Of a stretch of 64,000 nucleotides of DNA, positions 1,291 to 64,000 are shown one piece after another. Source of the stretch: Thalia democratica (taxonomy: Eukaryota); the NCBI GenBank assembly GCA_965202585.1, contig OZ241828.1, positions 17,856,001 to 17,920,000 of the forward strand, given 5' to 3'. The notes beneath the pieces were generated by a model, which ran no database searches, had not been told where the DNA came from, and saw nothing but the letters and a program-made list of their open reading frames with translations. The translations under genes were made by a program, and so were the position numbers. Every line of letters starts with the position of its first letter. The first letter of the stretch is position 1.

Positions 1291-1796
1291 TTCAATACAC
1301 TAAATTTAAAAAAACTATATAAAAAAATAATATAGATTAAAAAGGTGTACTTATTACAATAGTTTAAGAGTATAAGAAAGGGTAAAAATTGGGAGTTTGA
1401 TAAAAAGAGGTTTATAACCTAAACTCAAAAGTGAATGGTAATAAACTTTTATATCATTATCGATTAAATTTTCTTATTTTTAGGGTTTTTTTTTTTTTCT
1501 ACATATGTTTATTTATTTATTTTTATTTATAAGTTTATATCATTGCATTAATTTTTACCGATTATTAATAAATTTTTTTATCAGTTATTATTAATATTAT
1601 TATTTTATTACAGTTAAATATTTCTAAATTTAATAGTTATACTTATTATTTCCTTTATCTATTTATATTATTAATTTTTATGAAATAGATCGATTATATA
1701 TATTTATTTTATTATTAATTTTATTGATGTTCATCTTTTTTTAATTTACATTATTTATAATTTTTTTTTTACATTTTATTTCATCATAAAAAAAAT

Positions 1797-42675: not shown

Positions 42676-42808
42676 TTTGCGTGAATGAAATAACAGATCA
42701 TTCGCTCGCTAAAAACATGAAGCAGCTAGGCAAGTATTAATGTTATCATCGCTCAACAAATTCATACCTAATTTAAGTTTTAGTTTGTGACAATATTTAG
42801 TGGCGTCT
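42676..42808 (+). promoter_or_regulatory. Bipartite element copy
   Basis: TTTGCGTGAATGAAATAACAGATCATTCGCTCGCTAAAAA; TGGCGTCT at 42801; spacing 105. Confidence 0.5.
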
Positions 42809-44272
42809 ATCGGCCATTATGCTATTTTATCTAAATTTTACTTATACTAAATCAAATTGATAAATAAAAGTTCTTAAATCTAAAACTTCAAATAATATAT
42901 TTCTTTTTCTATTTCCGTTATAATATCAAAAGAAGCTTCCGATTAAAAAAAGTAAAGTAAAATAACAGAAACTACAGACGTTCCTTACCTTTTGTTAAAT
43001 TGTATAAAAAAGTATTAAGAAATTGTAACTAACTTAAAATCATAAAAAAAGACGTTATCTTTTTAGCTGTAATTTTAAATTTTAATAAATAAAAATTGTC
43101 CAAGTAGCTATGACTTTTGTAACTTTAATACCTACAAAGTTCTAACTAAAATTCTATATTTATTTAGTTTTTTTAGTAGCGTAAACAAGTATACTTATAT
43201 ATATTTTAGTTTCTTTACTATATCATGAATTTATGTTATACATATAACAAAATTTATTCAACTAACAACAAAATTTTATAAATAGATACTTAAACTAATT
43301 TTAAATGACTAAACCTAAATTTTAATTTTAAACAAATAACTAATTTTCAACTTCACAACTTATGTAGTTATATAAGTTTATTACTTAAAATACAGATATA
43401 ATCAATGTAGTTAATATTTTTTAAGTGAATGCATTATACGTAGCATTTTATTTTTTGTTGTTTATATAGTTTAGAAATTGGAAATTTTGGCAAAAGAAAT
43501 AATTTAACGGCTAAGTTTGTTTGGTCTAACTCTACTGTTTATTGCCTGATTAGCAAAAGTTTCATAAAATTGTTTTTTTCGATGACTGTTTAATTTTTTT
43601 TTCATAAGTTTTATTGAATATCAGTTAAGTTTTATAGACTTAATATTTTTTTAGAAAATGGTTGTATTATTTAAACTTAATTATTTTCAACAGAGCTCAC
43701 TTGAAGAGGCTTAAAAAAAACAATTTATATATAAAATTCAGTTAAAAAAATCTAGAACGTACGTTGCACAAAACAAAATAAAGCTTTTAATCTTAAAGCT
43801 AGTACGATTTGAATTAAATAGCTCTTTGCTAAACAATGATACAAAAGTTGTACAAAGAAAAATTAACTTAATTATAAGACCAATATTTAGTAGAAATATT
43901 CAATACAAAAATCAATCTCGAACTTAATAAACAACAAAAATTCACAAAAGTACAATTAAGTGACTTTAAAATACTTTGAAGCATTCTCAAATATTTTAGT
44001 AATTGCTATGTAGGTGATCTCTTTAAAACAAACTAAAAACATACAACAAAAAAAAACATTTATAAAGATACTAAATCAAATATTTTTTTATAATTTGATA
44101 TTTATCTTTCAAAAGTACAAATTATTATCCTACAAGTACTACTATGTTGTTCTTAGGTAATTAAATTTCATAATCTCTATATGTGTTCGCAACTAATGGT
44201 AAAATTGTTATTCATTAGAAAAATAAAACTAAATCATTTATTATATTCAAAGATAAACATTGTTATTATAAT

Positions 44273-44404
44273 TTTTACGAGAATGATTTTTGATCTATTT
44301 CTCGCTACAAAATAAGATGCTAGCCTCATCGTACTGACTACAAATGTTAGTTTGATATATTTATAAAACTAAAGTATCAGTTTGTAAGTTATACAATAAC
44401 GTCA
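44273..44404 (+). promoter_or_regulatory. Bipartite element copy
   Basis: TTTTACGAGAATGATTTTTGATCTATTTCTCGCTACAAAA; TAACGTCA at 44397; spacing 105. Confidence 0.55.
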
Positions 44405-44907
44405 GTTGAATTGTAATTGTTTTTATGAAAATTTAATAAATTTTCTATTGACTGATTACTCTACTTACTAGTTTTACAAGTTACAGCTAAACATTTTTAT
44501 AAAAAAAATGTTATGTTGTATAAATCTAACTTTAGTTTTATGTTCCATATCAGTATAATTATTTAAAGTAAAAATAAGCCTTAAGAAATAAAAAGCAGTT
44601 ATCTTTTCTATAGATTAAAATAACTAAGTTGCTAAAGCATAAAAACTCACAAAAACAAATTTATCATGTTTTTGAATTTTTTTGCTCATTGATATTTTCA
44701 TAAATAGATTTAAAATGGTTTTTAACTTAAAGTGCATCTAGTTTGTACGGCCTCAATTTTACATAGGTCGTCAATTTCACACAGAGTCATATTTTACAGA
44801 GTTACTTTTGACCGAGTGGTCACTTTGTATGAAGTTTTATTTTTGCACGGTATATATAATGCAGTTGATGAAATTAACGTTATTAACTTTAACTAAAATT
44901 GTTAAAT

Positions 44908-44956
44908 ACTTATTGACCGTCAGGCGATCAACTTATTGCCTGACGGTCAATGAAGT
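44908..44956. other. Isolated GC-rich perfect inverted repeat (14-bp stem, extendable to ~21 bp)
   Basis: ATTGACCGTCAGGC (44912-44925), 12-nt loop, GCCTGACGGTCAAT (44938-44951). Confidence 0.85.
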
Positions 44957-45270
44957 TTCAAAAAGTGACATTTTTTCATTTGATAAAAAAAAATGATTGA
45001 CACTAAAATTTCAGGTTACTTAATTTTCAGGTGTTAAAACTTTTAAATTCAAATTTAACTTATTTGAACTCGTTCATTATTTTTTTATAACTTATTGCGA
45101 GAGTCATGTAGGAGATTGGTTTTAAGTTTACAATATTTACTTATTTAGAATATCGCTGATACCTACTTCAGTTCATCTACTTGAGTTCAAAACTAGTACT
45201 TGTGTTTTTTTATATTTTGTACTAAAATAAGTACAAGCGCGGTTTTAGTTTTATCAACTGAAAAAACAAC

Positions 45271-45402
45271 TTTGCGAAATGATTTATAAGATCAATTGCC
45301 TGATACAAATTTTAAAACAAAACACTAAGTTCAAAATTGAGTTTAACTTTTAATTTATATTTTAGATTTAAATTTTAATTTGTGTGTTTTTGAATAACGT
45401 CA
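45271..45402 (+). promoter_or_regulatory. Bipartite element copy
   Basis: TTTGCGAAATGATTTATAAGATCAATTGCCTGATACAAA; TTTGTGTGTTTTTGAATAACGTCA; spacing 105. Confidence 0.5.
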
Positions 45403-46552
45403 TAATTTATTTTAATAAAACGAAAGTTAAACTATTAACTTTGATTTTAAAAACTATGACAATTTTATATATGATTTAAAAGATAAAACACTAATAAATT
45501 TCAATTATCAAAAATTAGATAGTCGCAATTAGTGTTTACAGTGCAAACTTACAAAATACATTATCGTATTTTGTACTAAACAACAAAAAAAAACCATTTA
45601 ATTTATTAACATATGAACAGTTAGTTAAATATTACTGTAATAACAAAAAAAAACAATTTGCACTAGTACTTCATTTGTTCACGATAATGAAAATTTCTCT
45701 GTGTTAGTTTTTTGATAACGAAGTTATTCGTTTATGCATTGTAGCGAAGCTTTCCAGAAAATATTGTTTGTTTAGAAAATGATCTTATTACGATCTTAAA
45801 TGCCAAATATTGGCATGTCAGTTCTGAAAATTTCTATCGCAAAAATATAATTAAAACACTAACAAACTCTCGTATACTCTTAAAATAAATGTTCGATTAA
45901 CTAAAACTGAAACTTACCGTTACTGTAAAAAAATGTATTTAAGTAAAAAAAAAATCATATTAAGCTGATGAATTTCTTTGTTAAGTTTAAATTTGAACTT
46001 TAACTAAAATGCTATTTGATGAACAAAGTTACAACAGATAACTAAACAAACAAATAATCTCTACTTTTATAATATTTAAGTAGTTTAAGTGTAATTGTAG
46101 TTAAAGCCTTAACTATTGATAAACATACAAACATCATTTAATAGTTATGTTATTTAATAATTATTTCACTGCGTACCTTTGCATTTTTTAATCTAAAAAA
46201 GACTATTAAATTGAGTTTAAACTATTTGGACTAGCGATCATCAAATAAGTGACGAACAATGAACTTAAAAGACTAAGAAATGATTGAGCTTAAATTCCAT
46301 GTTAATTAATTTGCAGTTGTTAAAACTTTGAAAGCTTTAATTTTATTTAATTTGAACCCACCCATTATCGTTTTATATCCGATAATTTTTTTCGAGAGAT
46401 TTGTAGAAAATAAATATAAATTTACAGTCTATATTTATTTACAATAACCTTGATATATTTACTAAAAAATCTAAAAAAAAAATGGATTTTTTTATAATCT
46501 GTACTAAAATAAATACACGCACGCTGTATATTTTGTATTTTTACTGATAACA

Positions 46553-46685
46553 TTTTGCAACAACAATTTAAAAGATCGAATGTTGCTAAAATACTGTAAA
46601 GAAAAATGGATATTATAAAATTAAGTTTCCCTAATATTTCTTTTCTGGATTTTAACTATAATTTGTGTGGTTTAGAATAACGTCA
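46553..46685 (+). promoter_or_regulatory. Bipartite element copy (degenerate Box1)
   Basis: TTTTGCAACAACAATTTAAAAGATCGAATGTTGCTAAAA; TTTGTGTGGTTTAGAATAACGTCA; spacing 104. Confidence 0.45.
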
Positions 46686-47062
46686 TGTTGTATCTATGTA
46701 GAACTTAAGAAAATTTGATGATATTTTATTCAAAAAATATTTTACAAAACACATATGCAAGAATTTTTAGATTATTTTGATTAAATGAATAGAAAAGTTT
46801 TTTTTTATTAAAAATCTAAAATCTAAGTACTCGTGGCAAAACGTTTTCAAACTTAATAGCTAGTTATGACCTATTATAAATTTAAAACTGGTAAATAAGA
46901 AGTAAATAAAACCTTAAAATCTGACTATTTAAGATTGCAACTTATAACACAAGTTCGTTGTTAAACTTAAAAAATAAAAAAAAATTATTATAAATTTAAT
47001 GGAAAAAGCAAAAAATCTGAAATAAACGAAAAACTTCTTTTTTTTTTTTGACTTGATGGAAC

Positions 47063-47098
47063 AAGAGCTCCAGTGGGCCACCCTACGCGACGCCCCTG
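47063..47098 (-). mobile_element. Solo hAT-type MITE terminus
   Basis: GGGCCACCCTACGCGACGCCCCTG; the reverse complement CAGGGGCGTCGCGTAGGG resembles CAGGGGCGT-type hAT termini. No partner end found. Confidence 0.45.
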
Positions 47099-47493
47099 AC
47101 GCACTTTTTCAAGGTTATTAAACAGATTACATAAAAATTATTATCATGATATAAAAGCTTATCAGTTTATTTTTTTACATAAATAAAAGTTTTAACTAAT
47201 TTATTTGTCCGTTGTTTAATTTTCAGTCAGAACTTAATGAAACTTATATCAATCACATCGCTAAGATATCTAAAAAAAAAGATGATTTAGTAGGAAGCAA
47301 CTTTTCAATTCTGCATTAAATATAATAGACTATGAAAGTCATTAGCCAAATATTAGTGAAACGCTCAGACAAAGTTAGAGATTATAATTTAATGGTAATA
47401 CGTTAAGAACAAACGTTTAGTTGGTAGAAACGAAGTTTCATTGCTAAATTGCTTTTCAGGCACAATAGTAAACCGACAATTTTGTTGCAGCTG

Positions 47494-47521
47494 GGCGCTT
47501 TGGCAAGCGCCTGCTACTTAG
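47494..47521 (+). mobile_element. Possible Helitron 3' end (GC hairpin followed by a CTAG-like sequence)
   Basis: GGCGCTT-TGGC-AAGCGCC then TGCTACTTAG; terminal CTRR is imperfect. Confidence 0.3.
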
Positions 47522-49709
47522 AAGCTTGAAATGGCAACGACTTTACTAAATTTAAACGCTGATGATCATTACCGTGACAATGATTACTTCATATTGAGTT
47601 TTAAGTGGAAAGGCCGTTAATTGTCGGATATGTTTCATTTTTTAAATTAAAAATAAATCATAATATGTTTTTACTAAAGCAGTATAAAGATAATTATTAA
47701 AATAAAAACTACTACATTTTTCGCATTAAGATTTACAATTGGCAGAAGTTAATGTTTTAAATGATTACAACTTCAACACAAAGAGTAATTTGCTAAAACT
47801 ACTTGATTTTTATGATGTTTTTACCAAAGCCATACATCTTTGTATCTTTTTATTTAAAATGATTAGACAAAAAAAAAGCCCAAAAGAAAAAATATACTAT
47901 AAATAAAAACAAACTGAAAATTACGTAAGTATTTAAATTTAATATCAAATTAAATAATAAATATTTTAATATATAATTTAATAGTTTTTTGTGTTTAAAA
48001 TTTTATTTCAAATTTTAGTAAGATAGTTTTTAAGTGTAGTTAAAATTAGAATTTTGAATCATACTGATAAGTGTAACATAATAGCTGTTGAGAATATAAA
48101 TGAAAAATAAGTAATAACAAAATTATAACTTTACATTTTCTCATCGATTGTCCGGCTCCTGTTAATCTAAATGAAGTTAAATGAATAAAAACAATCAGTA
48201 ATTAAAAGTGGCTTCATAAACTTATAAAAATTGATATTGATACTAGATATTAAATATAACACAAAAGCTGCAACTAGTTGAACTAGTTCTTGTGATAATG
48301 ATTTTTCTTTTATAAACACTAACTCGGTTCTCTTTTGCAGGCGCATGTAATCTATTTTACAGGTTTGTTTATATGTACCTACTTGACATTAATATCTAAT
48401 AACTATATATTTCTTCCAAATTTTTTCATCAATGACGTTGTCCTATGAGCTGTATCCAAGTGGTGTATGACACGATAACCGCAAGGTTTGTTTATACCCC
48501 AGCTCTTAGTACTAAATAGTAAAATAATAAATATTAAATATAATATTAAACACATAAGAGAATATGTTATAAAGCTATTATAGAATCAAACAGTGTTTAC
48601 ATTTTAATTATAAAAATTAAACAATTTTAGTGTCTAAACAATAGTTATGAACTAAAGTAGAATTAAATTAATTTTAATGCTAAGTATTGGTAACAAACTA
48701 TAGATTAAGTCTGGTACCTCAAAAAAACAATTTTTTGTTTTTCTCTTTGGATAAAATATAAAAAAATAAATTGTTATATAGAATTACATTAAACAAAAAG
48801 TAACCAATTTTAAACTTTAATCGATGTTGCATTGTTTGATACGATTGTCAGCCAATAGTGTTCTTCATGTGTTTCTATGGTAATTAATATTTACCAGTTA
48901 CGTTAAAAAAACAGTTAAACAAATTATTTGATTTAATTTAATCGCACTTTTTATTATACTAAAAGAACCTTTTGCTTCAATTCAAACTTAATAATGCTTT
49001 ATACTATATGACTGTTACATAAGATACTCATTTTACAAACTTTTACAGTAAAGTCAGATGGTTTAATCAGTATAAATCGGATCAATTATATAAATATCAA
49101 AAAATAATAGTTCAATAGATTTAATATTACATAAAAATGTTAACAAAAATAAATTCTAAAATAGGCTATATTAGCAATTTATAACTAATTTATAATACTT
49201 GTAAAAAATACTTTGCTTCAATCGCCCATTAAAGTTTAATATTGAAAATATCTAAACAATGAAATTTTATAAGTTTTTGAGGTTTTTAAAATTTTATGAT
49301 TATTATATTTAACAAAAAACGTTATATATAAAATGCTTACATATTTAAGAATAAATAATTAACTAAATCTCTAAGTTTTTTTACTCTATAAGTTTTAACT
49401 TTAAAACGTTCAAGTTTTAATGATTGGTTAAACAATTTTGTAGTTGTAGTCAAACAAAAATGAAATAATAGTTTTATATACTTAATTTAATACAAAATTA
49501 TATATAGCACTTGGTATCAGAAGAAAGTCTAAAACTTTTTTTTAATTACTTTCGCCAATGATTTTTCTTTCCATAGAAATATTATTTTTAGTCCTCAAAA
49601 TTTAATTTTTTTTCACACAATGATGTAATAATACAAACGGTTAACTCGACATTTAAGTAACTATCGTAATATAATATTCATAAATTTAATTTAATAATTT
49701 ATACTTAGG

Positions 49710-49874
49710 TTTACAAGAATGATACAACAGATCAATTTCTCGCTACAAAACTTTTTAATAAGATTTTTAAGTAAATAAATAATATGCACGAATTTTATAA
49801 AAATATTTAATCAAAATAACACAAAATATAAACCATTTTGTGTCAAAAATTTCTGTGTGTCTTAAATGACGTCA
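49710..49874 (+). promoter_or_regulatory. Bipartite element copy (long spacer)
   Basis: TTTACAAGAATGATACAACAGATCAATTTCTCGCTACAAAA; TGTGTGTCTTAAATGACGTCA at 49867; spacing 137. Confidence 0.5.
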
Positions 49875-50156
49875 TTTTGGGCATAAAATCTCTTATCAAC
49901 CAATAAATAGTAAAATTATTTTATACTAAAGTTAATAAAAGTTTATATGCAGCTTGTTCTAAGATAATTGAAAAGTATGAAAGATGTAACATTATATTAA
50001 AAAGAGTTTTTGCTTTTTTTACAATATTTAAATGCTAACTTGACTACCTTCAACACTTATCAATGAAAATAAAGTTATTTTTATAAGTTAAATAAAGTTG
50101 TTTTGATGATGATTTTTGGTTTTTTTATTGAATTTAATCATTTTTTAAGCACTCAC

Positions 50157-50291
50157 TTACGTCAAATATTAACACAAAAGTTAAAGCTTCATTATTTTGT
50201 TTATATAAAATCAGAATTGTTGAAATTGCAAAGCTTCTGTGTTTATTCTAATTTATAACGAGAATTTTATCTTTTGTATTATTCTCGTAAA
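50157..50291 (-). promoter_or_regulatory. Bipartite element copy
   Basis: TTACGTCA at 50157; ATAACGAGAATTTTATCTTTTGTATTATTCTCGTAAA; spacing 107. Confidence 0.5.
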
Positions 50292-51672
50292 TTAATAATC
50301 TGAAGTCTTTTTAGTATAAAATAAAATTACATTGTCTACTTTAAAAGCCGTTTTTTGTTTTGACGGCTATAGCAAAAACCTTTTTTTTGTAAAATTTTTC
50401 AATTTTTTCTAAACAACAGATTCGTTTATAGAATTTTTTTTTAGGAACAACACTAAATACTATGCACTTAATGAATATAAGCTGTAAATTAGTATAAAGT
50501 TAAATATAAATTATAGTGACAATACTTCTACAAGATATACTTTTCTATAAATTAAATGTTTAAAGTATTTAAATTGTATAAAAATACAATTTTATTATTT
50601 ACTGTGCACTCCTTTTGTACACAACCAAAAAAAAAAAGAATTAAGTTTATTTTTTTAATAAGTATAACATAAAAATTTATTGAATCCAAGTACTTATAAC
50701 ACTTTTTCTTAGTTCACCAGTTGCTATTGTTAAAAGAAGTATTTTAAATAAACTAAAATAAAAAACATTGCTAGAGATTAATATGCCTTTTTCACATTTT
50801 TAAAGTAGAGCAGTAAAAGTTTTTGATGGTTTTAAAATGTTATACAGTGACGACTTATAACGAAAATAACCAAATTGTAGCAAATTAAAATCAAATTAAG
50901 ACAAAGTAAGTTCAGCGAGTCACATTTACATGCTCCCAGGCTGCAGAATTTTCTTTCACCGTTTTTATTCAACTAAAGAATTAAGTTTTTGTTTACTAGA
51001 AAAGAATAGTACATTACATATTAAGATTTTGTATTCTGTTTTTAAGCTAGTTTCAATTTATTTGTATTTCAAAGATTTTGATATACCTGAGAAATTTTAG
51101 AGAGTTATCTAGTAGAGAGCTATAATATATTTAATTTCTTTTATTAAACTCTTCTACACAAAATACTCTACTATTGCAAACAAAAAATATTATGCAACCC
51201 AACTGAAACAATCTAAAGAATTGTATTAAACTATATAGTTACTTGTCTCAACTAATTTTTCGAAGTTTACTGTAGTATAAGCTTATTTAAATAATGATAT
51301 TGGTTCAAATTATATATTTTTTTTATTAGGTTTTCATGGAAAAATAATTTAAAACTTGTTAAGTCTGATTTACTATTTTATTATACTTAATAAAGTCGGA
51401 TTTTTTTTGAACCGTAACCTGGTAGTAAATAAAATATTAAATTTGTACCTAAATTATTTTTTATACTTTTAACTATAAAAATTTTACAACTGAAATAAAT
51501 GTAGAAAATCGCTAATAAAAAATATATGTTAAAACTTTGTTATTTTAAAACTAACACTTCTATAATTCAATGTTGAGTTAAAAGTTTAAATATAATGTAA
51601 ATTAATATAAACTAACTACAATTTGCAACTCAACGTGAACTTATAAAAAAATCTAGAAAATCAATTCAGAAA

Positions 51673-52104
51673 ATGGAGGGAAATGATAGAAATAGGAGAG
51701 AATACTTGGGTTTCGTGGTCTTTGATTCGTAGTGATGCAGAAACGTAAAAAACATTTTTTGAGTTGAAAGTTTTAATGCAAATAAATTATGAAGATGTCA
51801 CAGTATTGGATACTGATAATTTTCAAAATCAAAAATAAGAGCTTTAACTGCTGATTAAAGAGCAAGAACAGCTTCAAGATCAACTGAACCAGGAGTATAA
51901 TATTTTTTTAAATTATCTTTTATGAAACAATTCAAGTTAAACGAAAACTAGATATTAATATGTCTGACATAGACGATGAGGAACAATTGATTCTTTTTTA
52001 TCAGAAATTGAACCTTCAAAGAGGATTGACTCGTGAAAGAATTCAGCAATTTAAACAATTTACAGCTGACTAGTCATTTGTTGGTGATCAGTGTGTAATG
52101 CTTA
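51673..52104 (+). pseudogene. Decayed intronless gene: coiled-coil/acidic region leading into the start of a RING-H2-type zinc finger, truncated at the first CxxC
   Basis: Reconstructed across stops and frameshifts: MEGNDRNRREYLGFVV..LIRSDAET*KTFFELKVLMQINYEDVTVLDTDNFQNQK*EL*LLIKEQEQLQDQLNQEY..YETIQVKRKLDINMSDIDDEEQLILFYQKLNLQRGLTRERIQQFKQFTAD*SFVGDQCV(I)C. Purine-rich, codon-like composition against an AT background. Confidence 0.65.
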
Positions 52105-53185
52105 AGTTAAAAAAGAATGTAAACGAGAGTATTTTATCTGTAAAATGTTTAATTATATTGTATTGTTTCAGCTTTTGATAATAAACGTTGCTAGTTTCAA
52201 TTTTGTCAATAAATCTGACTACTACAGTAAAAAATAAAATATGGCATTTCATTTAAAAATTGTTTCATAATGACGTGATAATTAATTCTTGTTTTTCAAG
52301 TTGAAATATTCTTCTTTGGGGAAGCTAATTCTATTATAAACTTCTCGTTGGAATTACATGAACACATACGTAAAATAATGTAAGAACTTTTTTCTTTTAG
52401 CTTACGTTTAAATACGTTTAAGAGGTTGTATATAAGAAGTAAAGAATTTAGCTAAACAACATTGAACGAAGGAGAAAGAGATAAAACGAGATAAAAATTT
52501 AGGTTATTGTCAACAAATTTACTTTGTTTCTTTTATTAGTTTATTTATCCCTGATTATCTTTTTAAACTCAAATTGTGCCAGTGAATTAGTTAAGCCATG
52601 ATGGGTTTAGTTTTAGCTAGGCTAACAATAACTTTATCACTTTAATGTGTTTAAATTATTCTTTTTATTTCATTAAATCATGTTTTATAACATATGTAAT
52701 ATTCTAGTTGGTTTTTTACATACTACTAAAAGTACTAATTTAGACGTCTGATAAAATACGCTCATTTATTAATTTTAGTACAAAATACTTAACAAAAGCA
52801 AGTAATATACTTAAGATATAAACATATATTAAGTAAAGCAAAATTTCACCTCCGTTTTAAGTGAGCTAAAAATTAGTCTCAATTGAAAGCGTTTATAGTT
52901 TTATTCAGAGCTCAGTTTTAATCAAATAATAGCTCTGCTAATAATTTAAACGAGTGAACTTTAAATTTTGTATACTATTACCAGATAATAAAGTGAAAAA
53001 AAAACTATTGAAAATCTGCACATTTTAAAATTAATTTTCAAATAAGATAAACATTCTTTTAAAAGTAACTGGTAAGCTTGAAACAACAAACAAAATCTTC
53101 AAAATTAGTCAGTTTACGAAATTTCAAGCAACTTCAAGTTTTTAATGGAACACATTTTTTTATATAAAATATCTAAAACACTAAG

Positions 53186-53326
53186 TGACGTCACTAGATA
53201 GAAACACAGTTAAATGTTGCAATCTAATAGATTAAAAAATAAACAAAACTACTAATAAAAAACAGAAGTGCACTAACTAATCAAATTTTAGGCGAGATGT
53301 TGATCTTTTATATCATTCTCGCAAAA
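53186..53326 (-). promoter_or_regulatory. Bipartite element copy
   Basis: TGACGTCA at 53186; GGCGAGATGTTGATCTTTTATATCATTCTCGCAAAA; spacing 112. Confidence 0.55.
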
Positions 53327-54266
53327 TATAATAGCACAAAAAATGCAGTTTTGTATAGTTAAGAAAGTAAAGAAAAAATTTTGGACGATTGACTGTCATT
53401 AGCATTAGTTTTTCCCAGCAATATCAATAAGTAAAAGTTATAATTTTTTTTTAGTCCTGAAAAACTTTAATTAAACCTTTGAAAGAATCTCTTAAACATA
53501 TAAATAGAAAAACATAAAGTAGTGTAAACAAAAATTAAATATTTCAAAAATCAATTATGTATTATGTACATACAAAAAAAATCAAAACTGAAACATTGTG
53601 AATTTTAAAAGTAAAACAAAAAAAACAAAATTTAAAGCCCATAGAACATCAACATAAACGAACTGAAAATTTTTTTAAAATTAATCAATTACGACTTCTT
53701 AATACAAGACAAAAGGGGTAACTGAGAAGTTAATCTACCGATTGAAACATTGCTTATTTCAATACTTCTAAAAAGTAACTATGTTAGATTACAAAAAACA
53801 CATATAAAATTTGATCAAAGCATAATATTCTAGAAGTAAACAATTTTATGTAATTTTCAAAAACCTCAAATTTAACCCTAAACATATTTCAGTTAAATAA
53901 TATATTTATACATTGAAATCTAAACCAGAGGTTATCATTAATTATAACAAAAACAAATCAAAACAATTTATATAAAAATGCTATAACTTCTAAGGTTAAA
54001 AGTTTTACTAACGTTTTTTATACTATTTGTTTAAAAAAAAAATGCGTTATGGGGCTAATAATTTAACAAACAATATCTTGGTAAGTATTTTTTAAACAAA
54101 CTATTAGGCTCAAACAAAATATTTTATTAAACGGTAATAGTATAGTTTCTTGTTTTTTGTAAAATATTATCCATGTATAATATTCAAATATTACTTAAAC
54201 GTAAATATTTTATTATACCAACTATTTTCCAAAATTTACCTGTTTTTCAAATGATATGTTGTTACG

Positions 54267-54400
54267 TTTTGCGAGAATGAAAAGGAGATCTGTACTCACT
54301 ACAAATTTTTCTTTTCCAAAATTTCCAAAGTGTTTTTACACTACTTTCACTTCATAAACTACGTTATAGTAACTATTTGTGCGTCTTTCAAATGATGTCA
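54267..54400 (+). promoter_or_regulatory. Bipartite element copy
   Basis: TTTTGCGAGAATGAAAAGGAGATCTGTACTCACTACAAA; TTTGTGCGTCTTTCAAATGATGTCA; spacing 106. Confidence 0.55.
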
Positions 54401-57400
54401 CATAATGAGTTTAACATTTTCTAATAAAGTTTTACAAGTTTATCACTGCTTGGAAATAATTAATGAGTTTTTGTTTAGAATTATATCTTAAACTTTTTCA
54501 ATTTAAACAGTACGAACAAATGTTTGAACAGAAAACTAACATTTAATTACTATAGCTCTTAGAGTTAGTAATAATAAACAAGATTAATTTTAAAATATTA
54601 AAATGACTAGAACTTTTGCTAACGGTATTTACTAAAGAAAACTAAAAAACAATTTTTCTGAAATTTAAAACTAAACTATAGTAAATTTTTAAAATAGATT
54701 ATCTTACAAAATTAGTAAATAAAACCATTTCTAGTTTAAATTTAAACTTAACTCTGATTAAAACTATAAAAAATATCATTTTTGAAGTAAGATAATTTTC
54801 TAGTTAAATACAAGGGCAGAGAAAAAAACAGAAAACAAAATTTAAACAAGAAACGTTTAGTTTTATTTAAATATTGTTAGTTTAGTATAAAAAAGTAATT
54901 TGATTAGATTTGAATCGTAAAATCCTGTCATAAACAAAACATTTTTTTATGTTGGTATTGTGTAACGTGGAACAACTGTTAAGTAATTAAATAAGTTTAT
55001 TTTTTGGATTTATTTGTATTATAACTAACAAAAGTTATAAATGTAGATTAAGTATGTAGAATCCTACATGATGCTTCTACTAGTTTAAAAGTGTGTAAAA
55101 GTATTTAATTATTTGTGCTGTTTTCGTAATCAAAAACCAAACTATATTTGAACTTCGTTTTTGAAATATACATACAAACTGTTAATTCATTAAAAATAAA
55201 AAGTTTACCAAAAGCATATAACTAATAAACTGATTAATATTATTAGCGGAAAACAATGTTGAGACAGTTGTTTGCATAAAATAAAGAACTAGTAAAAAGT
55301 ACACATGTTTGTTTGAAAACAAACAAAAATAATGGTGGTAAACAGAGTGTAAAAAAAAAGGAAAAATTTACTAATTAATGTATAGTTTCTGTTTGCTGAC
55401 CTATATTGACCTTTTGGATAATAAAACTTTCTTTTCGTTCTTAAAACTAATTACTTAAAATTAAAATAAGTTTATAAAAGTTTTCAGAGATTTACAGCAA
55501 GTAAATAATTATGTGCTTAGTTCAAAACAAAAATTGTAGTGATAATTGACCTTTTATATAAATATCCTAATAATTTACCGAATAGAAACATCATAAAAAA
55601 GTTAGCGTGTAATATTTTTAGCATGAAACCTTTATCAACATATTTTTTAACTATTTTTTAGGTTGATTGCTAAAAGCGTAAACTACAGTTTCATAAGTAA
55701 AGCGTAGTTACAGATTTTGTTAGTTGTATGGTTTTAGTATGGTTTAAAAATTTGATGTAGTCTTTTAAATAATTTTTTCTAAGCAGGAAACAAAGTTAAA
55801 GTAATTTTTTAATTAAAAACATTGAGAATATGCTAAAACGAGTAACAATTAAAACTACAAAACTTTTTAACAAACTTAATGATTAATGATAATAAACACA
55901 TTACAAGCAATAGTACTGTAGAAATATTTGTACTGGTTCAGTTTCTGATAAAGCTTTTGTCAATAAAGCTTAGAAGTACTATTGAAAATTGAAAGTTTGC
56001 AGTTTTATACAAAAACTTGTAACATAATGACGTAATAAAGAATACTTACTAAAAAATTACATTATTCTTCTTTGGTTGAAAATAAATATTTTCAAACTTG
56101 GTTCTTGAAGTTCATGAATATAGTTTTGAATTTATATTCAGTTTTTTTTTTCTCTTAGAGTAATAGTTTTATATTTGTAATTCGTTTAAGAGTTTTGTAT
56201 ATATAGCATAAAATTTCTATTTATCAAAATTAAACGGTTGTTTTTAAGAAGCAGGAACTACAAAGAGGTAACAATTTAGAATTATGTAAATAAACTTACT
56301 ATTGCTTTGTAATTAATATTATTTAGTTGCTTTGAGTTTTTAATTACTCATACTTGATATCAGACAACTAATTACATAATAATAACTGGTTTTATTTTAA
56401 GTCAATATAATAGCGACTTCAGCAGTATTTTTAATGTATATTGGAATTAAATAAAACTTTTGCAAAATATCTTTGTCTTTTTCCTTTGAACTTGTTCATA
56501 TGCTATAATATTAAATAGTCTGTTTGAAACATTTGTGTTATGTCCTGGACAAGACATAAAAATTTGTGGTTTACGACTTGGTAAATGAAAAGATTTGCCA
56601 TGTATTAGGTTTTGCAGAAAACTTTATAGACGCTTGTTTTTTTAGTTGAAAAAACAATTCAATTTATTTAAGTTAGGACATTAAACATATAATGCTTGTT
56701 TAAAAAATAAGATTTTAAAGTTTGAAATTAACCTTAAGACAAAATGTAGTATAAAAGTAATTTCTACTTAATAAATGGACATTTTAGTTGTTTATTATTT
56801 ACTTTGTAATCTTAGATACAAGATAACGTCATTTAAAAACACACAAGTTTTACATTCATTACTTTGGTTATATATTTACAACTTTCCCAATTAAATTTTC
56901 CTTATAATATAGTTTATTAATTTGTAGCGACAATTTATATCGTTCACGCAAAACTTTCCTCGATAGAATCAAAATAATTTTACGGGCCAAACGATTTTAT
57001 ATTTTTTAAACATTGGCGGACTTAGTATATTTTCATTCCTATAAACATTTTCCAACCGAAGTATAGACTTACCTTATAACTACCTGGTTTTAAGCGACAA
57101 ATAATCATTCTTTGAATAAAAACGACCGGAAAGAAACAAAAAATAAAAGCGCGTTTTATTATATTACTACTATCTATATAATATTTAATTACTTATAAAA
57201 AATAGTATTTTTAGCTTTAGTCTCAATCAGTAAGCATAGTTTAGTTCAAGAAATAGTTTAGTTTAATTAGTAAAATATTCTTGCTTGTCAAGTATTATTA
57301 TCTAATACATAAGGTTTATCTAGTAACAACCGTCTCTAATTTTACTTTTATTAGTTTTTGCAAATTCATCGTTTGGTTTTTTAATAAGAAAAAAATAAAA

Positions 57401-58060
57401 CTTAAAGTATAACTTAAAAATATGTGTTAAATAAAAAAGAAATACTTTAATTTGTAGCGAGTAAGCAACTTCTAAGTTATTAAATTTTTAATACTCAGAA
57501 AAAGTACTAATTTAAGGAAAATGGTTAGGCTCATAGTTTTAATTTGGTTTAATTGACAAAAAGTAAATATTTAGGTTGACTACTCAACCGGCAATGAGTA
57601 CCTAACAAATGCGTACTTAAGCGAAAGATTACTGCTCATAATAACTGTACTTTGAAGATATTTTCCTCTAATTAAGTACGTTAGTATTCTAATGAGAAAA
57701 TTATCTATCTATCATAAATGCGAAAATAGTTCACTGAAAATTAATGAAAACATGTTGTGCTTTATTTTGTTTGAAGTGTTTATTAATTTTTTGAACAAAA
57801 AGGGTTTTTAAATAAGAAAAGAAGAATAATTAAAGCATAACTCAAAATATTGAGTTAAATTAAAAAATAAAAATTGTAGCAAGAAAGCAACGTTTAGGTT
57901 GTTAAAATTTTAGCAATTCAATATATAAAGTTAAACATTTGTTTTAAAGCTTTTCACAAACACAAAAGCTTGCGAATTTAGAACTTAGAAATTATATTTA
58001 AGAATTTTAGCAAAAGAAAAAAAATCAAGTCACATTATTTATATTATGACTGTTTGATTA

Positions 58061-58199
58061 TTTTACGAGAATGATAAAAGGATCGATTTTTCGTTAAAAA
58101 TATAGTTTGATAATGGAAATACTCGTTTATACTTTAAAATGGCTTTATTTTATATCCCTTCCTATCATTTTTGAACTTGTGTGCATTTGTGTGACGTCA
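58061..58199 (+). promoter_or_regulatory. Bipartite element copy
   Basis: TTTTACGAGAATGATAAAAGGATCGATTTTTCGTTAAAAA; TGACGTCA at 58192; spacing 111. Confidence 0.55.
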
Positions 58200-59003
58200 C
58201 TTTATGATTAAATACTGATTTTTAAAAATTTATATTTATTATTTTAATTTTATAAAATTGCTCTGCACTGTGTACTGTGATAACATTGAAAATGATAATT
58301 TTATATGAGTTTATTTTTTAAAAAAGTGTTCCGAAATTTTTTAGACTTAAAGAAGAAAATGCTTAATAAACTTGTAATAAGATAAGTTGAAATAAATAAT
58401 ATATAGTAAAATACGATATTATAATTAAAACTAAAACTTAAGGGAAACGTTTTTGCAACTGCATTAAATTTACATGCAAATATTCTCTCATTTGGCTTCT
58501 TAAAAAACGATTTGAAACTTTACTAACTAAATAACTGCAGTTTTTGTTTATTTAAAAAACTATACAATCAACAATTAAATGACCAACTTATTTTAGTTAA
58601 AAAATCATAAGTTAAAGTACCAGTGTATCGTCACAATAATTAAAGTTTTATTAAGTTATATTGAAAGTAACACACTTTTACTAAACAAAAATGGCAACAC
58701 TAAAAGAAGAACGACAAAAGTTTTTATAACTACAAATCTTTTAGGAAAATATCAAGCGTTATAGTTATATAAAATACAGTATTTCTAAATTACACTAAGT
58801 TTAATCACTTGACACAAATTTAATAAACTATTTAATTCAATTATTTCTTTTATAAAAAATTTTGTTTTATAAATTTTTATAAACTTGTGCTCTTAAGACA
58901 CTGTTAGAAATAAAAATTTCAAGTTAGACAAAATTTAATTTAAATAAAAGCAATAAATTTATACTAAACTTAAACAGTAAAACGTTTAAGTACCTTAGTC
59001 TTA

Positions 59004-59126
59004 TGACGTCATTATATTAATTAAAGCTAAAATTTAAATACTTTTAAAAAGCTACAGATTTAAATATTCTCCATTTAAATATCTAAATTTTAAACGAGAA
59101 TTTGATCTTTTTTATCATTCTCGTAA
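59004..59126 (-). promoter_or_regulatory. Bipartite element copy; a second degenerate minus copy follows at 59204-59331
   Basis: TGACGTCA at 59004; AACGAGAATTTGATCTTTTTTATCATTCTCGTAAA; spacing 96. Confidence 0.55.
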
Positions 59127-59583
59127 ATCAGTTTATGTTATGAATGTTATGAAAAAATATGAGCTGTATTTTATTTAAAAACTTTTAAATTTTTAGCTCT
59201 TTTTCACGTCATAATAACTTACCACAAGTTTAACATGTTATTTTTTAATCTATTAAATTAGTAAAAAAATGATGATCAATACACATATTTATAAATTTGT
59301 AATGAATTTAAGCAATTTTTATTCTCGTAAAGTTTTTAGTGTTCGAAAAATAATAAAAAGTTAACAACTACATTGATTAAAGTTTATTATGCTTCGTTAT
59401 AATGTTTATACTATCTTAGTATTTGTTATTAAATATGATCTTTATTAATTTATAGCAGAAAAATTGTACTGCAACAATAAAACTACATAACTTTTATTCT
59501 TTTAAAACATTTTGTAGCAAAAAATTTTCTATTTATTAAAAGAAGCAGAAATATTTTACTTTAAAAAGGACTTAAACCAATAG

Positions 59584-59718
59584 TTACGAGAATGATATAG
59601 TAGATCAATTTCTCGTTATAAATTAACAAAGCAAAGCTTCTACATATGAATTTTAGTGATACTGTTTTTCATATATAAAATAATAAATGATAAACTTATG
59701 TGTAAATATATGACGTCA
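59584..59718 (+). promoter_or_regulatory. Bipartite element copy; an internally shortened copy follows at 59885-59995
   Basis: TTACGAGAATGATATAGTAGATCAATTTCTCGTTATAAA; TGACGTCA at 59711; spacing 108. Confidence 0.55.
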
Positions 59719-61319
59719 GTGAGTGCTTAAAAAATTCTTAAATGCAATAAAAAAAACAAAAATCATCATAAAATGAAAATTATCGCGCTTAAACAAATTT
59801 TTGTAAGAAGAAAAGCTGGATGATAAAATTCAGTAAACTTATGAAATTTGTCTTCTTTTTCTAGAGTATATTTTATATATAATGTTACGACTAAGTTTCT
59901 CGTTTAAAATACACATATTACTAGAAAAAAACATTTCATATAAATTTAGATTCAAAATAGTTAAGCTACGACTTGTGTGTAATTAAATGACACCACTTAC
60001 TGCTGAAAAAATTATTTTAATGAGTAAAAAAACTAAATAAGTGGTCAGCTTTCTTAAAACTTTTATAAAATTTAATGAAGTTACTGTTTTTTTTTTTTTT
60101 TTTTAAAAACCTACTTTTATATGATTTGTAAAAGTAAATCTTAATTTAAACAGAAATAATTTTAAGCAAATTTAAAATAATAGAAATTTTCTATAGATTA
60201 TATTTAATAGTTATATGTATTGGAAAAAATTTATTTGTCAAAATTTATTAAAAATACTGAAAAAATAAACTTATAGATTTTTTTAAGTTAATGTGTTTAA
60301 TTAGATGTAGAAATGTAAAACGAAATGTCTACCTAAGACAAAAACTAATGTCCGATTAAACAACTTATTAATATGACTGTAAGTAAAATGTATGATTAAA
60401 AAACAGTCAAATGTAAAAGTGTAAAACATATGGCTATTTTACTAAAACTGAACAAAACTACTTATTTAAACCAAAGTCTGACTGTAACTAAAACTACGAC
60501 ATGTGTTAATTTGCCATCTCAGTAAAATCCTGCAACATCTGTTGATATTTTTCTGAATTATATATAGTTTATAGTTAAATTATTATACAATGTCAAAACA
60601 TGTTATAACGTCGATGCTTTAAAATGAATCAACTAAGCCAATAAATTACAAAAGAGAAATTTAGAGGTCGTTTTATCATTATAAATATGCCAGAAATGCA
60701 CAACTATTTATATTGAATAAACTTACATTGCAAAATCAAATGTTTACATGAGAGTTCACCTGTATATTAAAAATAATTTGCTTAAAACAAGTAAAACAAT
60801 AGGATTGCTTGTTGATATTAGCTTTTATTTTTATCAAAGCATAAAAGTCAAAGTAACGTTTTAATGTTATGCCATTACATTTGACTTAATTTATATACTT
60901 TTTGTGAACAAAAATTTAAAGAATGAAATATTTTGTTTGAAACATTACAATATTTTGAATAAATGTAGTTTTCAAAGTTAGAATACAAATCAATCAATAA
61001 AAAAGCACTACCATTCGCAAAATAGTTAAGTAGTTGAATATTTGAAACAATTATTTTCAAAATTGAATAATATATAAACTTTATAAGTGTAAGCTTAGTA
61101 GTACAAACAAAACTGTTTAGTAAAACATATAACAGTATCTTTAAAAACATCTTGGGTAAAGTATTAGGCTTACACAAAATATTACATTTAACAGTCATTT
61201 TATATTTTGTAAGTTATTTTTTATTTACAATGTTTAGATATTGCTGAAACACAAAAACCTATAGTAGTTTTAACTATTTTATTAAAATTATTTATTTTCC
61301 CAAAATATATTCAACTAAG

Positions 61320-61452
61320 TTTTACGAGAATGGTAAAAGAGATCAGTTTCTCGCTACAAATTATTTTCTGTAAAAACCATCCAATGCTTTTAACTAGTTT
61401 TAATTTAAATATTATAATGAATGTTTTTTTGTGTCTTTTTAAAGTTACATTA
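61320..61452 (+). promoter_or_regulatory. Bipartite element copy (strong Box1, decayed Box2)
   Basis: TTTTACGAGAATGGTAAAAGAGATCAGTTTCTCGCTACAAA; TTGTGTCTTTTTAAAGTTACATTA; spacing 104. Confidence 0.5.
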
Positions 61453-63340
61453 CTGAACATTTTTGACACCTTTTAACAAAGGTTTTGTATAAAAAGTTAT
61501 AAGTGCTTAATAAGGTGTGGTTTATAATTTTATGCAAAAAATGCTATTAAATGGTTAACATAAATGTTTAAAATATAAATTAATTTAAATCTACATAGGT
61601 TTAAGCAGTTATAGTAATGAACAATACTGTTTTGGGAAAAAATTGAAATTAGTAGATTTTTTTTTTAATTTCTTTACTTTAAAAATCTAAGAAATAAATT
61701 TCATTGAAATTTATAACAAACTATAGTTGAAACAAAAACTAAACTGAATAAATAAATTAGCAGTTCTACTCAAAACTCAAACTTATCTCTGATTAAAGCA
61801 CAACAAAACTTTTACTTTTGATTAGGACGATTGTTTTAAATATACACAAGGGTTAAAAATATAGCTGTTTATTTCAATATAAACAATTAACATTTAGTTT
61901 TAGTTTTAAGTAGAACTGTTTTTACTTAATAATTCTTTTAAACACTTATGATAAAGCTGATAATTTCAAATGAAAATTATAAAAAAAAGTATTCAGCGGC
62001 TTACAGTAAGTGAGCAACAATTAACTTATTTTAAATAAGTGGGACACCTTCTCCTCATAAAGTATTAAATAGAATCACAACAAAAAATAGATGAGTAGCA
62101 ATTTTAACATAATACCTTAATCACCATACTTTTAAAGTGCCGAAATTTGTCTTTCATTTATCAAGTTTAGGTTAATTGTTTAAAGCTCAGACAATCAAAA
62201 GTAGCTTATCACAAGGACAGTGTAGTTAAAGTTTAATAAATAGAATGGTTAATTTCAATTTTGTTATTCTTAAATAACTTATTCTAAGCAATTAAGAAAG
62301 TCAAAGACAGCTTTGTTGTTAAAGAAATATTAAATATATATTAAAACGATTAACAAATAAAACGAAACACATTTTTATAATAAACATAAGAACTAATGAT
62401 AATAAGCACATTAGAAGAAAAAGTATTTTATATATTAACTTTAAAACTTTTTTTCTTTTTAAATTTTTGATAAAACTTAAGTTTGAACTATTTGACAGTT
62501 TGAATTACTATTAATAAAGATCATAAATATCAGTGAATTTTAAAAGTTTGTAGTTTTATTCAAAATTTGCAACATAATGACGTAATAAAGATACTTGTTA
62601 TGACGAGTACATCATTCTTTTGTTAAAAATAACTTGGTTCTTGCATAACGTGCACATGGTTAAAAATTTATATTCAGCTGTCAATTAGCTTATAATTAAA
62701 GTCTTTTATTTTGACACGTTTAAGAATTTATATATGACATAAAATTCAACTTTTTAAAGTTAAACTGTTGTTTTTAAAAATCAAGGATAAAAAAATGTAA
62801 TGATTAAGAATTTTGTCAATTAACTTACTATTGTTTTGTTTATCAATTAATGTATATAAGCTAGAAGTTTGTTGTTTAAAATCTTTCAGACAATAGAAAA
62901 ACATTTTTAAAATTATGATATGGGTTTATTTAAGCAAATGTTGGAACTATAACTTTTTTAAATATTATTTTAAGCAAAAATATCAACAAAATTGATCTAC
63001 GAGAATAGTTTAAATTACCAATATCTTATTTTAAGTTGAACTTGTTACACCTATCCAAATTTTTAAACTAAGCACAGTGTATATAAAATATAGTCAAGCT
63101 TTAGTTTGTGATTTTAAATACTGATGTCATGTAAACTTAAAGTATTTTTTTAAAGTTTTTTAAGTTGAATAGACAATTCAATTTGTTAAAGTGAAAAATT
63201 TAAACATCTAGTGTGTCTTTTGAATTTTAGAACTTAAAATTTTAATTGAACAATAAGAAAACAAAATATAGTTTAAAAGTAGTTTCTGCTTAAATAAAAT
63301 TTTAATTAGTTCTTTAATTTTTGTAATCTTAGATACAAAA

Positions 63341-63473
63341 TAACGTCACTTAGAGACACACAAGTTTTAAAATCATTTATATATACATATTTTAACGACA
63401 CTTTTAATATATTTAAAGCTTTATTTTAAAATAGTTTTTGTGAAACTTGATCTTTTATAACATTCTCGCAAAA
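63341..63473 (-). promoter_or_regulatory. Bipartite element copy; paralog at 56824-56953, facing plus copy at 62998-63129, lone Box1 at 63586-63622
   Basis: TAACGTCACTTAGAGACACACAAG; TTGTGAAACTTGATCTTTTATAACATTCTCGCAAAA; spacing 104. Confidence 0.55.
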
Positions 63474-64000
63474 CGTTATCAGTCAAAAACAAAATAATTC
63501 TGCTTTCCAAATTTTTATATATTTTTCAAGCATTGGCGGGAGTACATTTTCTAGCGCTAGTATAGACTTACGTTATAACTATCTGTTTGTAGCGACACTT
63601 GATCTATTACATCATTTGTGTAATAAAAAAGACCAGAGAGAAACAAAATGAAAAGCGCATAACAGTATATTACTTTTATCGATATAAAAATTAATTATCT
63701 AAGAAAACATTTGTTGTTGGAGATTTAGTCTCAATAACTTAATCATAGTTTAGTTCAAATAATAGTTTAACTTAATTAGTAAAATATGTTTGTTTGTCAA
63801 GTATAATTATCTATTATATTATATTTATTTTACTTTTTGTTAGTTTTTGCAAATTTATTGTTTTCTTGTTTTAATAAAATAAAGTTATTTAATATATTCA
63901 CTTAAACTTAAAATACTAATCTATTACTGAAAATATAAGACTACAATGTGTTTGTTTAGCAGAAAATTAAGGAAAAATATTTGGTTTGTAATTTTACTTT

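Follow-up and report, generated by a model that had tools for sequence, protein, structure and literature searches.

What are the bipartite elements that recur over the last third of this stretch, and what might they do? The preliminary description had reported about 17 of them, each pairing a long imperfect palindrome (Box1) with a CRE-type palindrome (Box2) at a fixed spacing of about 105 bp, and had proposed promoters, a chromosome-structural unit and a DNA elimination signal as candidate roles. We refer below to the whole 64-kb stretch of DNA analysed as the window.

Composition and spacing of the units

Searching with a profile HMM built from 72 units (nhmmer, E <= 0.01) returned 18 matches at 42663-63626 of the window, 11 on the + strand and 7 on the - strand, with the boxes where they had been placed before. 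Sixteen of the 18 matches cover all or almost all of the unit from Box1 to Box2; two contain Box1 only. The matches are as follows, distances being GATC-to-Box2.

42663-42830, + strand: unit 1, degenerate Box1 AGATCATTCGCTCG, Box2 TGGCGTCT (E = 3.1e-17; distance 105)
44267-44423, + strand: unit 2, Box2 TAACGTCA (E = 1.1e-17; distance 105)
45267-45411, + strand: unit 3, Box2 TAACGTCA (E = 1.7e-16; distance 105)
46544-46699, + strand: unit 4, degenerate Box1 (E = 1.1e-10)
49698-49894, + strand: unit 5, exact Box1 right arm and exact TGACGTCA (E = 3.6e-18; distance 137, the spacer exceeding the usual length by about 30 bp)
50136-50297, - strand: unit 6, Box2 TGACGTAA, facing the Box2 of unit 5 about 280 bp away (E = 2.9e-23; distance 107)
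53162-53336, - strand: unit 7, exact TGACGTCA (E = 2.8e-23; distance 112)
54252-54418, + strand: unit 8, Box2 TGATGTCA (E = 3.7e-16)
55503-55583, - strand: partial unit, Box1 end only (model positions 8-89; weak, E = 0.01)
56805-56962, - strand: unit 9, Box2 TGACGTTA (E = 5.4e-18)
58049-58218, + strand: unit 10, exact TGACGTCA, member of an 8-copy subfamily with flanks still alignable (E = 3.6e-23; distance 111)
59003-59134, - strand: unit 11, exact TGACGTCA, short spacer (E = 1.4e-13; distance 96)
59572-59740, + strand: unit 12, the best copy, with Box1 at 59587-59615, TATA-like TATATAAAA at 59672-59680, TTATGTGT at 59696-59703 and TGACGTCA at 59711-59718 (E = 8.8e-24; distance 108)
59895-60016, + strand: partial unit lacking Box1 (model positions 45-174; E = 1.8e-08)
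61306-61465, + strand: unit 13, good Box1, decayed Box2 TTACATTA (E = 4.9e-20)
62984-63151, + strand: unit 14, Box2 TGATGTCA (E = 2.3e-13)
63319-63482, - strand: unit 15, Box2 TGACGTTA (E = 9.2e-20)
63562-63626, - strand: partial unit, Box1 only (E = 2.4e-04)

Each unit is a non-coding module of ~150 bp in the AT-rich genome of a marine animal, and per-column information identified three blocks that alone are informative: Box1, a TATA-like block and Box2. Box1 is the family-specific palindrome CGAGAATGATATAAAAGATCAATTTCTCG of 29 bp (up to ~40 bp), with the outer arms TTTTACGAG/CTCGT(T)AAAA. The TATA-like block, cnGTTTTATATAAA, follows ~46-50 bp past Box1 and sits 37-46 bp upstream of Box2, which begins ~28-32 bp past the block. 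Box2 itself consists of TTGTGTG-N7-9-TGACGTCA and a further ~16 nt that are less strongly conserved (a weak 3′ extension, nTnnGyGCTTAAAA). Measured from the first base of Box1 through this extension, the unit is about 145-150 bp long, approximately one nucleosome. Exact copies of TGACGTCA number five in the window, all at 49867-59718, compared with 0.3 expected from shuffles, and allowing one mismatch gave 21 matches against 8.7 expected.

The GATC-to-Box2 distances counted earlier (105, 105, 105, 137, 107, 112, 111, 96 and 108) were reproduced, and the spacing is indeed constrained; however, it forms a unimodal band of about +/-5 bp with no fixed value, and it is not helically phased. Among 68 units, the end of Box1 lies 83-103 bp from the start of TGACGTCA (mode 91-93), with a single outlier at 124. 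The spacers had been described as AT-rich and unalignable, which holds for their unconserved sequence (information per column ~0) but overlooks the positioned TATA-like block within them. With Box2 as reference, TATAWAW occurs in 12/68 and 14/68 units in the two 6-bp bins that cover -48 to -37, where 1.4 units per bin are expected; G+C falls to 3-10 % at the block, and a G/C bump lies immediately 5′ of it in the Box1-to-Box2 orientation. The surroundings, formerly called CpG-poor, have GC-poor flanks but are not depleted in CpG (observed/expected about 0.8-1.1).

Conservation and genome-wide layout

Comparison of diverged paralog pairs (15-16) gave identities of 0.85-0.88 for Box1 and 0.75-0.80 for Box2, whereas spacer identity was 0.59-0.66 and flank identity 0.65-0.75 in the same pairs; the least conserved stretch is the part of the spacer adjoining Box1 (0.59). 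Spacer length differs between paralogs by 3.7 nt, compared with 7.0 nt in flank windows of equal size. The earlier proposal of selection on motif and spacing is therefore upheld by box identity (0.80-0.88 vs 0.59-0.66 in the spacer) and by a spacer length held between paralogs, and the comparison supports the view that boxes and spacing behave as if selected, unlike uniform repeat decay. Nor did the paralogs reveal any transposon structure, in agreement with the claim that transposon decay is not responsible. Upstream and downstream flanks evolve alike in these pairs, so no gene body can be seen beside the units on either side.

The density of one copy per kb estimated previously is close to that within the window (~1 per 1.2 kb) but not to that across the 220 kb examined (~1 per 2.6 kb). 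The window and the following 200 kb (264 kb) contain 85 profile matches; neighbouring units are 0.3-20 kb apart, and their strand order looks random. Genome-wide, the Box1 pattern has 248 matches compared with 6 for the control, and Box1 with TGACGTCA at 90-120 bp has 112 compared with 0. Almost all Box1-family matches fall in two multi-Mb clusters of chromosome C4 (15.1-18.9 and 87.8-92.2 Mb), and extrapolation puts the family at about 1,100 units. The Box2 composite alone has 353 matches (control, 1), clustered on at least three chromosomes, C1 and C2 as well as C4; the Box1 family lies inside a wider superfamily. In one sister array the palindrome is CTGTCT-N5-AGACAG; the TTAAAA tail recurs there, as does a TATA-like run at an equal distance. 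The layout is consistent with transcription units that belong to a locally amplifying family, and a Box2 composite common to arrays on other chromosomes fits a shared core promoter with family-specific upstream sites. The units are surrounded by gene-poor DNA, in which the ORFs comprise BACK-Kelch genes, orphans and a fragment that, judged by eye only, is reverse-transcriptase-like.

This distribution does not suit the suggested analogy to a CDEI-CDEII-CDEIII centromere: approximately a thousand copies occupy both strands of several chromosome arms in multi-Mb arrays, hundreds of them on the arms of C4, whereas a point centromere has one functional copy per chromosome. The signal for breakage or elimination that was also raised before has no support and is a poor fit with one copy every 1-3 kb.

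Proposed promoter modules and rival readings

Searches for a product were negative. ORFs are not in excess around the units, whichever side or strand is considered, and we found no conserved peptides near them, no tRNA and no RNA folding signal in the spacer. Rfam 15 returned nothing at gathering score over the window and nothing at E <= 1 over 42000-64000; a described structured RNA was rejected on this account, and the statement that this is not a described element stands, the literature searched likewise containing no match. An snRNA-type promoter was also rejected, as the element preceding this genome's U6 genes is another one (CACGCAAACATCCGTAG, followed after about 25 nt by TATATATA). 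In nine U6 copies, the 77-nt upstream region lacks Box1, and only CACGCAAAC resembles Box2, its distance from the TATA box being different. U1 5′-end loci show neither box, although this set consists mostly of chance 12-mers.

Of the roles proposed earlier, independent promoters remain the best reading and gain from the TATA-like block, whereas the snRNA-type version fails on U6. We tentatively favour the interpretation, drawn from sequence features, that each unit acts as an autonomous, TATA-containing promoter module and yields a short non-coding transcript of unconstrained sequence. The positioned TATA-like block strengthens this reading, and its distance to TTGTGTG is the usual one from TATA to start. 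A dimeric sequence-specific protein would bind the Box1 palindrome, TBP/TFIID the TATA-like block and a bZIP factor (CREB/ATF-type) TGACGTCA, with transcription predicted to start about 30 bp from the TATA-like block. The block reads equally well on both strands, and base composition is not skewed on either side of the units; the Box1-to-Box2 direction is slightly favoured, in which case TTGTGTG would contain the start and the CRE palindrome would lie at about +10 to +20. The predicted product is a short or unstable non-coding transcript, free in sequence, and by analogy the arrays may act like the scattered clusters of mini-promoters from which nematode piRNAs are made.

A small run, possibly RNA (X8, contigs only), counts against the promoter reading, having given just spurious ~20-nt matches over 57900-63800. 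So do the different long palindromes that sister arrays always carry at the same distance: they are odd for ordinary transcription-factor sites, and the pattern hints at a structural role of the dyad. In classical promoters the order is a CRE near -70, then TATA near -30. The same order is obtained if the unit is read in the opposite way, as a tiny RNA gene with a promoter made of TGACGTCA, CACACAA and the TATA-like block, a start ~30 bp past that block and an RNA of about 60 nt, in which an unconstrained 5′ segment of 15-25 nt and then an A/U-rich stretch precede the Box1 hairpin, with hairpins differing by array. We consider this unlikely, although it would account for a Box2 composite common genome-wide beside a dyad that differs between arrays (e.g. 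CTGTCT-N5-AGACAG), for a dyad that is always palindromic yet variable in sequence, as expected of an RNA or DNA hairpin, for Box1 folding better than shuffled sequence (mean z = -2.2) and for the low conservation of the spacer adjoining Box1. Against it, Box1 arms show no compensatory changes beyond the effect of CpG decay and no G-U asymmetry (42 wobble-compatible changes on one strand, 49 on the other), and, on the strand transcribed in this reading, T-runs in the pre-hairpin AATTTTTAA and in the loop CTTTTAT would stop Pol III. The different U6 element and the lack of an Rfam match count against it too, as does the X8 result. More doubtful still is an extension in which the arrays form a genome-encoded, germline-style repertoire of thousands of tiny guide-like RNAs, each driven by its own copy of the shared CRE+TATA promoter and ending, after a hypervariable segment of 15-25 nt, in a hairpin specific to its family; these might be made unit by unit like nematode piRNAs, in another architecture and lineage.

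That the units are instead protein-binding modules (enhancer, insulator, origin or chromatin-organising), with no need for transcription, is possible but improbable, if marginally less so than the reversed RNA gene. A palindrome-binding dimer and a bZIP factor would sit about one nucleosome length apart, in keeping with the extent of the unit, and both main boxes are palindromic, as for dimeric DNA-binding proteins; sequence is conserved and pairing is not, and folding, ORF and Rfam tests gave no sign of a product. The Box1 arms also resemble the baculovirus hr palindrome GTTTTACAAGTAGAATTCTACTCGTAAAGC, which co-occurs with CRE motifs (PMC13513840), but the likeness spans about 9 nt only, and hr are tandem ~72-bp viral units whereas the units here lie 0.3-20 kb apart in host-like DNA. 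A positioned TATA-like block suits a promoter rather than an insulator, and approximately a thousand near-identical sites, one per 1-3 kb, would stand in gene-poor DNA without obvious targets. Remnants of a short mobile element (MITE, Helitron or foldback) with surviving protein-binding ends are very unlikely. High copy number on both strands, a hairpin-forming Box1 such as occurs at Helitron or IS200-like ends and subfamilies with alignable flanks speak for them; however, a decaying transposon loses all parts alike, which is not the case here, none of 17 indels between paralogous segments is bounded by the unit, and no empty site was found. Terminal inverted repeats or a CTRR-type end at a fixed distance from the boxes are lacking, nothing conserved outside the boxes marks a terminus, and the Box1 family is nearly confined to its two clusters on one chromosome rather than dispersed.

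Comparison with known systems

The module is compact and its geometry fixed (a 29-bp palindrome, a TATA-like block and a CRE). If the modules are working promoters, the genome would contain about a thousand independent mini transcription units or more, spread over several families and with products free to vary, a layout that to our knowledge is so far well documented only for nematode piRNAs; this would be a second, independent case of how genomes build and maintain unit-transcribed non-coding RNA repertoires. If untranscribed, they would be one of the most extensive arrays that any animal genome has of a composite protein-binding module with constrained spacing, and would suggest a chromatin or replication system specific to the lineage.

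Protocadherin- and olfactory-receptor-style arrays similarly retain a conserved promoter element per amplified member while the rest diverges, but they contain long coding exons, of which the ORF and peptide searches gave no hint here. The snRNA-type promoters (DSE/PSE/TATA) are likewise multipartite, with fixed spacing, short non-coding genes and a TATA at a fixed distance from another element; the genome's own U6 element nevertheless differs and is not accompanied by Box1. Baculovirus hr combine 30-bp imperfect palindromes with CRE/TRE-like sites and act as enhancers (PMC13513840). They share with the units an imperfect ~30-bp palindrome paired with CRE-type bZIP sites in repeated modules, and their outer arms, TTTTAC(A/G)AG ... 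CTCGTAAA, nearly match those of Box1, an analogy only. However, hr are tandem ~60-75-bp repeats of viral genomes, conserved at 72-90 % over the whole unit, while the present units are dispersed over Mb of host-like DNA, with unconserved spacers and a TATA-like block; no viral genes were found among the ORFs examined around them.

Type-I piRNAs of nematodes are 21 nt long, start with U and derive from capped precursors of ~26-30 nt, with the Ruby motif about 40 nt upstream of the small RNA. The core of this upstream motif at type-I (21U-RNA) loci is CTGTTTCA (PMC3597512), which is absent from the consensus and logos of the 68-72 units, where a palindrome, a TATA-like block and a CRE are found instead. 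The unit here is also longer (about 150 vs about 60 bp) and sparser (about 1 per 1-3 kb vs several per kb). The two systems nevertheless have in common hundreds to thousands of autonomous, non-coding mini-units on both strands in a few Mb-scale clusters, with a conserved upstream motif in fixed geometry and unconstrained sequence between and beyond the motifs.

Composition of the units

The preliminary description had reported ~17 bipartite elements, each joining a palindrome to a CRE, at 42676-63622 of the window; a profile built from 72 units returned 18 matches at 42663-63626, bearing out both the number and the extent. Halves of the palindrome recur on both strands only past 42 kb, and the exact CRE palindrome TGACGTCA occurs five times in the window, all at 49867-59718, versus 0.3 copies expected. 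Alignment of 11 copies gave the consensus TTTACGAGAATGATAnAAAAGATCAAnTTCTCG (Box1), a spacer of ~90 nt and TTGTGTG-N7-9-TGACGTCA (Box2). The previously listed GATC-to-Box2 distances were reproduced wherever they were measurable (105, 105, 105, 137, 107, 112, 111, 96 and 108).

The genome sequence read comprised the window, the next 200 kb and twenty 3-kb loci, with the sister arrays and a second cluster covered by samples only. The first profile detected 85 units over the window and the 200 kb that follow, lying on both strands in near-random order. Within these 264 kb, units found by the profile contain 26 of the 35 copies of TGACGTCA, and one more copy, at 59004, forms Box2 of unit 11; three actin loci hold one copy in total (L003).

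As the preliminary description had proposed, a per-column comparison of boxes and spacer located the information content in Box1 and Box2, with a weaker contribution from ~16 nt 3′ of Box2 (nTnnGyGCTTAAAA). The end of Box1 lies 83-103 bp from TGACGTCA (mode 91-93). Stacking the spacers by Box2 revealed a third element, a T-rich/TATA-like block (cnGTTTTATATAAA) positioned 37-46 bp upstream of TGACGTCA; TATAWAW is present in two adjoining 6-bp bins in 12/68 and 14/68 units, against 1.4 expected per bin. G+C content is 3-10 % at this block, with a small G/C bump on its Box1 side. The 'TATA-like' TTAAAAAT directly after Box1 is better assigned to the palindrome, of which it would form the weak outer arm (TTTTA...T-TAAAA). 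A k-mer search from -400 to +700 found no further conserved box outside the unit.

Conservation and genomic distribution

Paralog comparison used ~28 pairs whose flanks are still alignable. In diverged pairs, identity was 0.85-0.88 for Box1 and 0.75-0.80 for Box2, versus 0.59-0.66 for the spacer and 0.65-0.75 for both flanks, and between subfamilies the boxes are the sole alignable parts; the earlier observation that boxes persist as spacers become mostly unalignable stands. Spacer length differs between paralogs by a mean of 3.7 nt, compared with 7.0 nt for 92-bp flank windows. This pattern is evidence for selection acting on the boxes and on their spacing, as the preliminary description had inferred. 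Flank divergence is similar upstream and downstream of the units, and hence no gene body is visible. The claim that the boxes survive in CpG-poor DNA did not hold: in 42000-64000 and in the sequence flanking 50 units, the observed/expected ratio of CpG is 1.3-1.8 within units and ~0.8-1.1 in the AT-rich flanks, which are GC-poor yet not depleted of CpG.

Genome-wide, the Box1 pattern CGAGAATGAT-N3-8-GATC returned 248 matches (6 for the reversed control), and Box1 followed by TGACGTCA at 90-120 bp returned 112 (0 for the control). Nearly all of this family is on chromosome C4, at 15.1-18.9 Mb and in a second cluster at 87.8-92.2 Mb, the latter carrying the variants CGAGAATGATGAAAAAGATC and TGAGACATCA. 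Since 19 exact Box1 matches correspond to 85 profile matches in the 264-kb sample, extrapolation puts the size of the family at roughly 1,100 units. The Box2 composite by itself is more widespread (353 matches versus 1 for the control) and forms clusters on C1, C2 and other parts of C4 that lack Box1. A sister array type carries a CTGTCT-N5-AGACAG dyad; all three copies read have a TTAAAAC-like tail and, ~45-53 bp beyond, a TATA-like run. Box2 and the TATA-like block look like the common part of a wider superfamily and the palindrome like its family-specific part. A metagenome scan for homologues yielded 21 chance matches on GC-rich bacterial contigs, none with Box2, and a literature search found nothing relevant on the motif or on TGACGTCA enrichment in exons.

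Genes and other features of the locus

The window covers 17856001-17920000 of chromosome C4 in an assembly totalling 801.8 Mb, and its G+C content outside genes is ~22-24 %. Positions 1-41 kb hold a 13.64-kb unit in three tandem copies (97-100 % identity), each with one BACK-Kelch gene, which marks the genome as that of an animal; the third copy, split into two 253-aa ORFs, is probably broken. Kelch genes seem to be the sole recognisable genes embedded in this C4 cluster.

Features of the Kelch loci
Window 6159-7571, 19851-21101 and 33441-34903: BACK-Kelch ORFs of the tandem triplication; BTB domain absent from the ORF
L021:7792-9210 (C4:18097792-18099210), minus strand: additional BACK-Kelch ORF, 473 aa, within a unit-free 20-kb stretch of the array
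Window 35060-35205, minus strand: putative decayed unit recognised by eye, TCAATTTCGAAAA ... 93 bp ... CTGTGTCTCAAGTGAGATAAC; counterparts at about 7.8 kb and 21.4 kb

The element at 35060-35205 lies ~170 bp 5′ of a Kelch ATG and is oriented toward the gene. We regard its reading as a degenerate unit copy upstream of the Kelch genes as unsupported: its spacing is right (~93 bp), but it gave no profile match even at E <= 50.

Several repeats were also recorded. At the left edge of the window (1-1333) is a tandem repeat whose spacing alternates between 190 and 218 bp; it comprises six overlapping 300-nt copies of 74-97 % identity. Insertions of two sizes show clean presence/absence among paralogous segments, ~565 bp (L006:784-1353 and L018:3171-3736; 84784-85353 and 207171-207736 when the window and the following 200 kb are joined) and ~2.4 kb (L008:5713-L009:2132; 109713-112132 joined); they probably represent genuine transposons that have no relation to the units. 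An ORF fragment at L010:1613-2008 was judged by eye to be reverse-transcriptase-like.

Candidate promoters and alternative readings

The units are most simply read as an array of autonomous candidate promoters for non-coding transcripts of unconstrained sequence, because promoter-like distances are kept between the palindrome, the CRE palindrome and the TATA-like block positioned between them, and all else is changeable. Transcription from Box1 to Box2 is the slightly favoured prediction, given that TTGTGTG follows the TATA-like block by 28-32 bp, that the G/C bump is on the Box1 side of this block and that conservation extends past Box2. Base composition showed no skew on either side of the units that would mark a transcribed strand. 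No public RNA run contained the stretch. Words of one actin gene were present in marine metatranscriptomes and in unlabelled runs; when four of these runs were compared with the array stretch, the putative RNA sets among them gave only spurious matches of ~20 nt, a result that is no evidence of silence.

Transcription in the opposite direction would place CRE, TATA and start in the classical order, account for the presence of some palindrome at the same place in every array and yield a ~60-nt RNA ending in a Box1 hairpin. Box1 alone does fold better than shuffles, as any palindrome must. An RNA stem is not borne out: the arms of Box1 show no compensatory change beyond what CpG decay explains, and G-U-compatible changes total 42 for one strand and 49 for the other. 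Sequence rather than pairing is kept, which favours recognition of Box1 at the DNA level. The unit, about one nucleosome in length, is possibly a non-transcribed protein-binding module. Descent from a mobile element was rejected: 0/17 indels between paralogous segments are bounded by a unit, termini are absent, decay is non-uniform and copies are not dispersed.

Protein-coding genes behind the module were likewise dismissed, there being no ORF excess upstream or downstream on either strand; no peptide is conserved across subfamilies, and 42-64 kb holds a single 107-aa ORF without a Pfam match. Rfam gave no match at gathering score or E <= 1, no tRNAs were found, and spacers fold no better than shuffles (z-scores ~0), arguing against known RNAs and against a spacer hairpin or pre-miRNA. 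Box2 was also rejected as a splice site, with AG before it in only 13/68 units and GT after it in only 10/68. The snRNA-type promoter suggested previously was abandoned, as U6 genes carry a different upstream element (CACGCAAACATCCGTAG, ~25 nt, TATATATA) and no Box1; matches to a U1 probe were mostly chance 12-mers. The U6 genes are themselves clustered, often as inverted pairs (C8:39.30-39.43 Mb, C10:10.5-12.6 Mb and C6:57.8-58.0 Mb); the C6 copies score lower and differ in their upstream region, which is AT-rich, and could thus be either variant genes or pseudogenes.

Homeodomains of the posterior Hox/Cdx class likewise prefer CTCGTAAAA as their binding site. The palindrome of baculovirus hr elements, GTTTTACAAGTAGAATTCTACTCGTAAAGC, co-occurs with CRE motifs (PMC13513840). 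Its outer arms match those of Box1, and the hr elements offer a striking analogy to the units described here.
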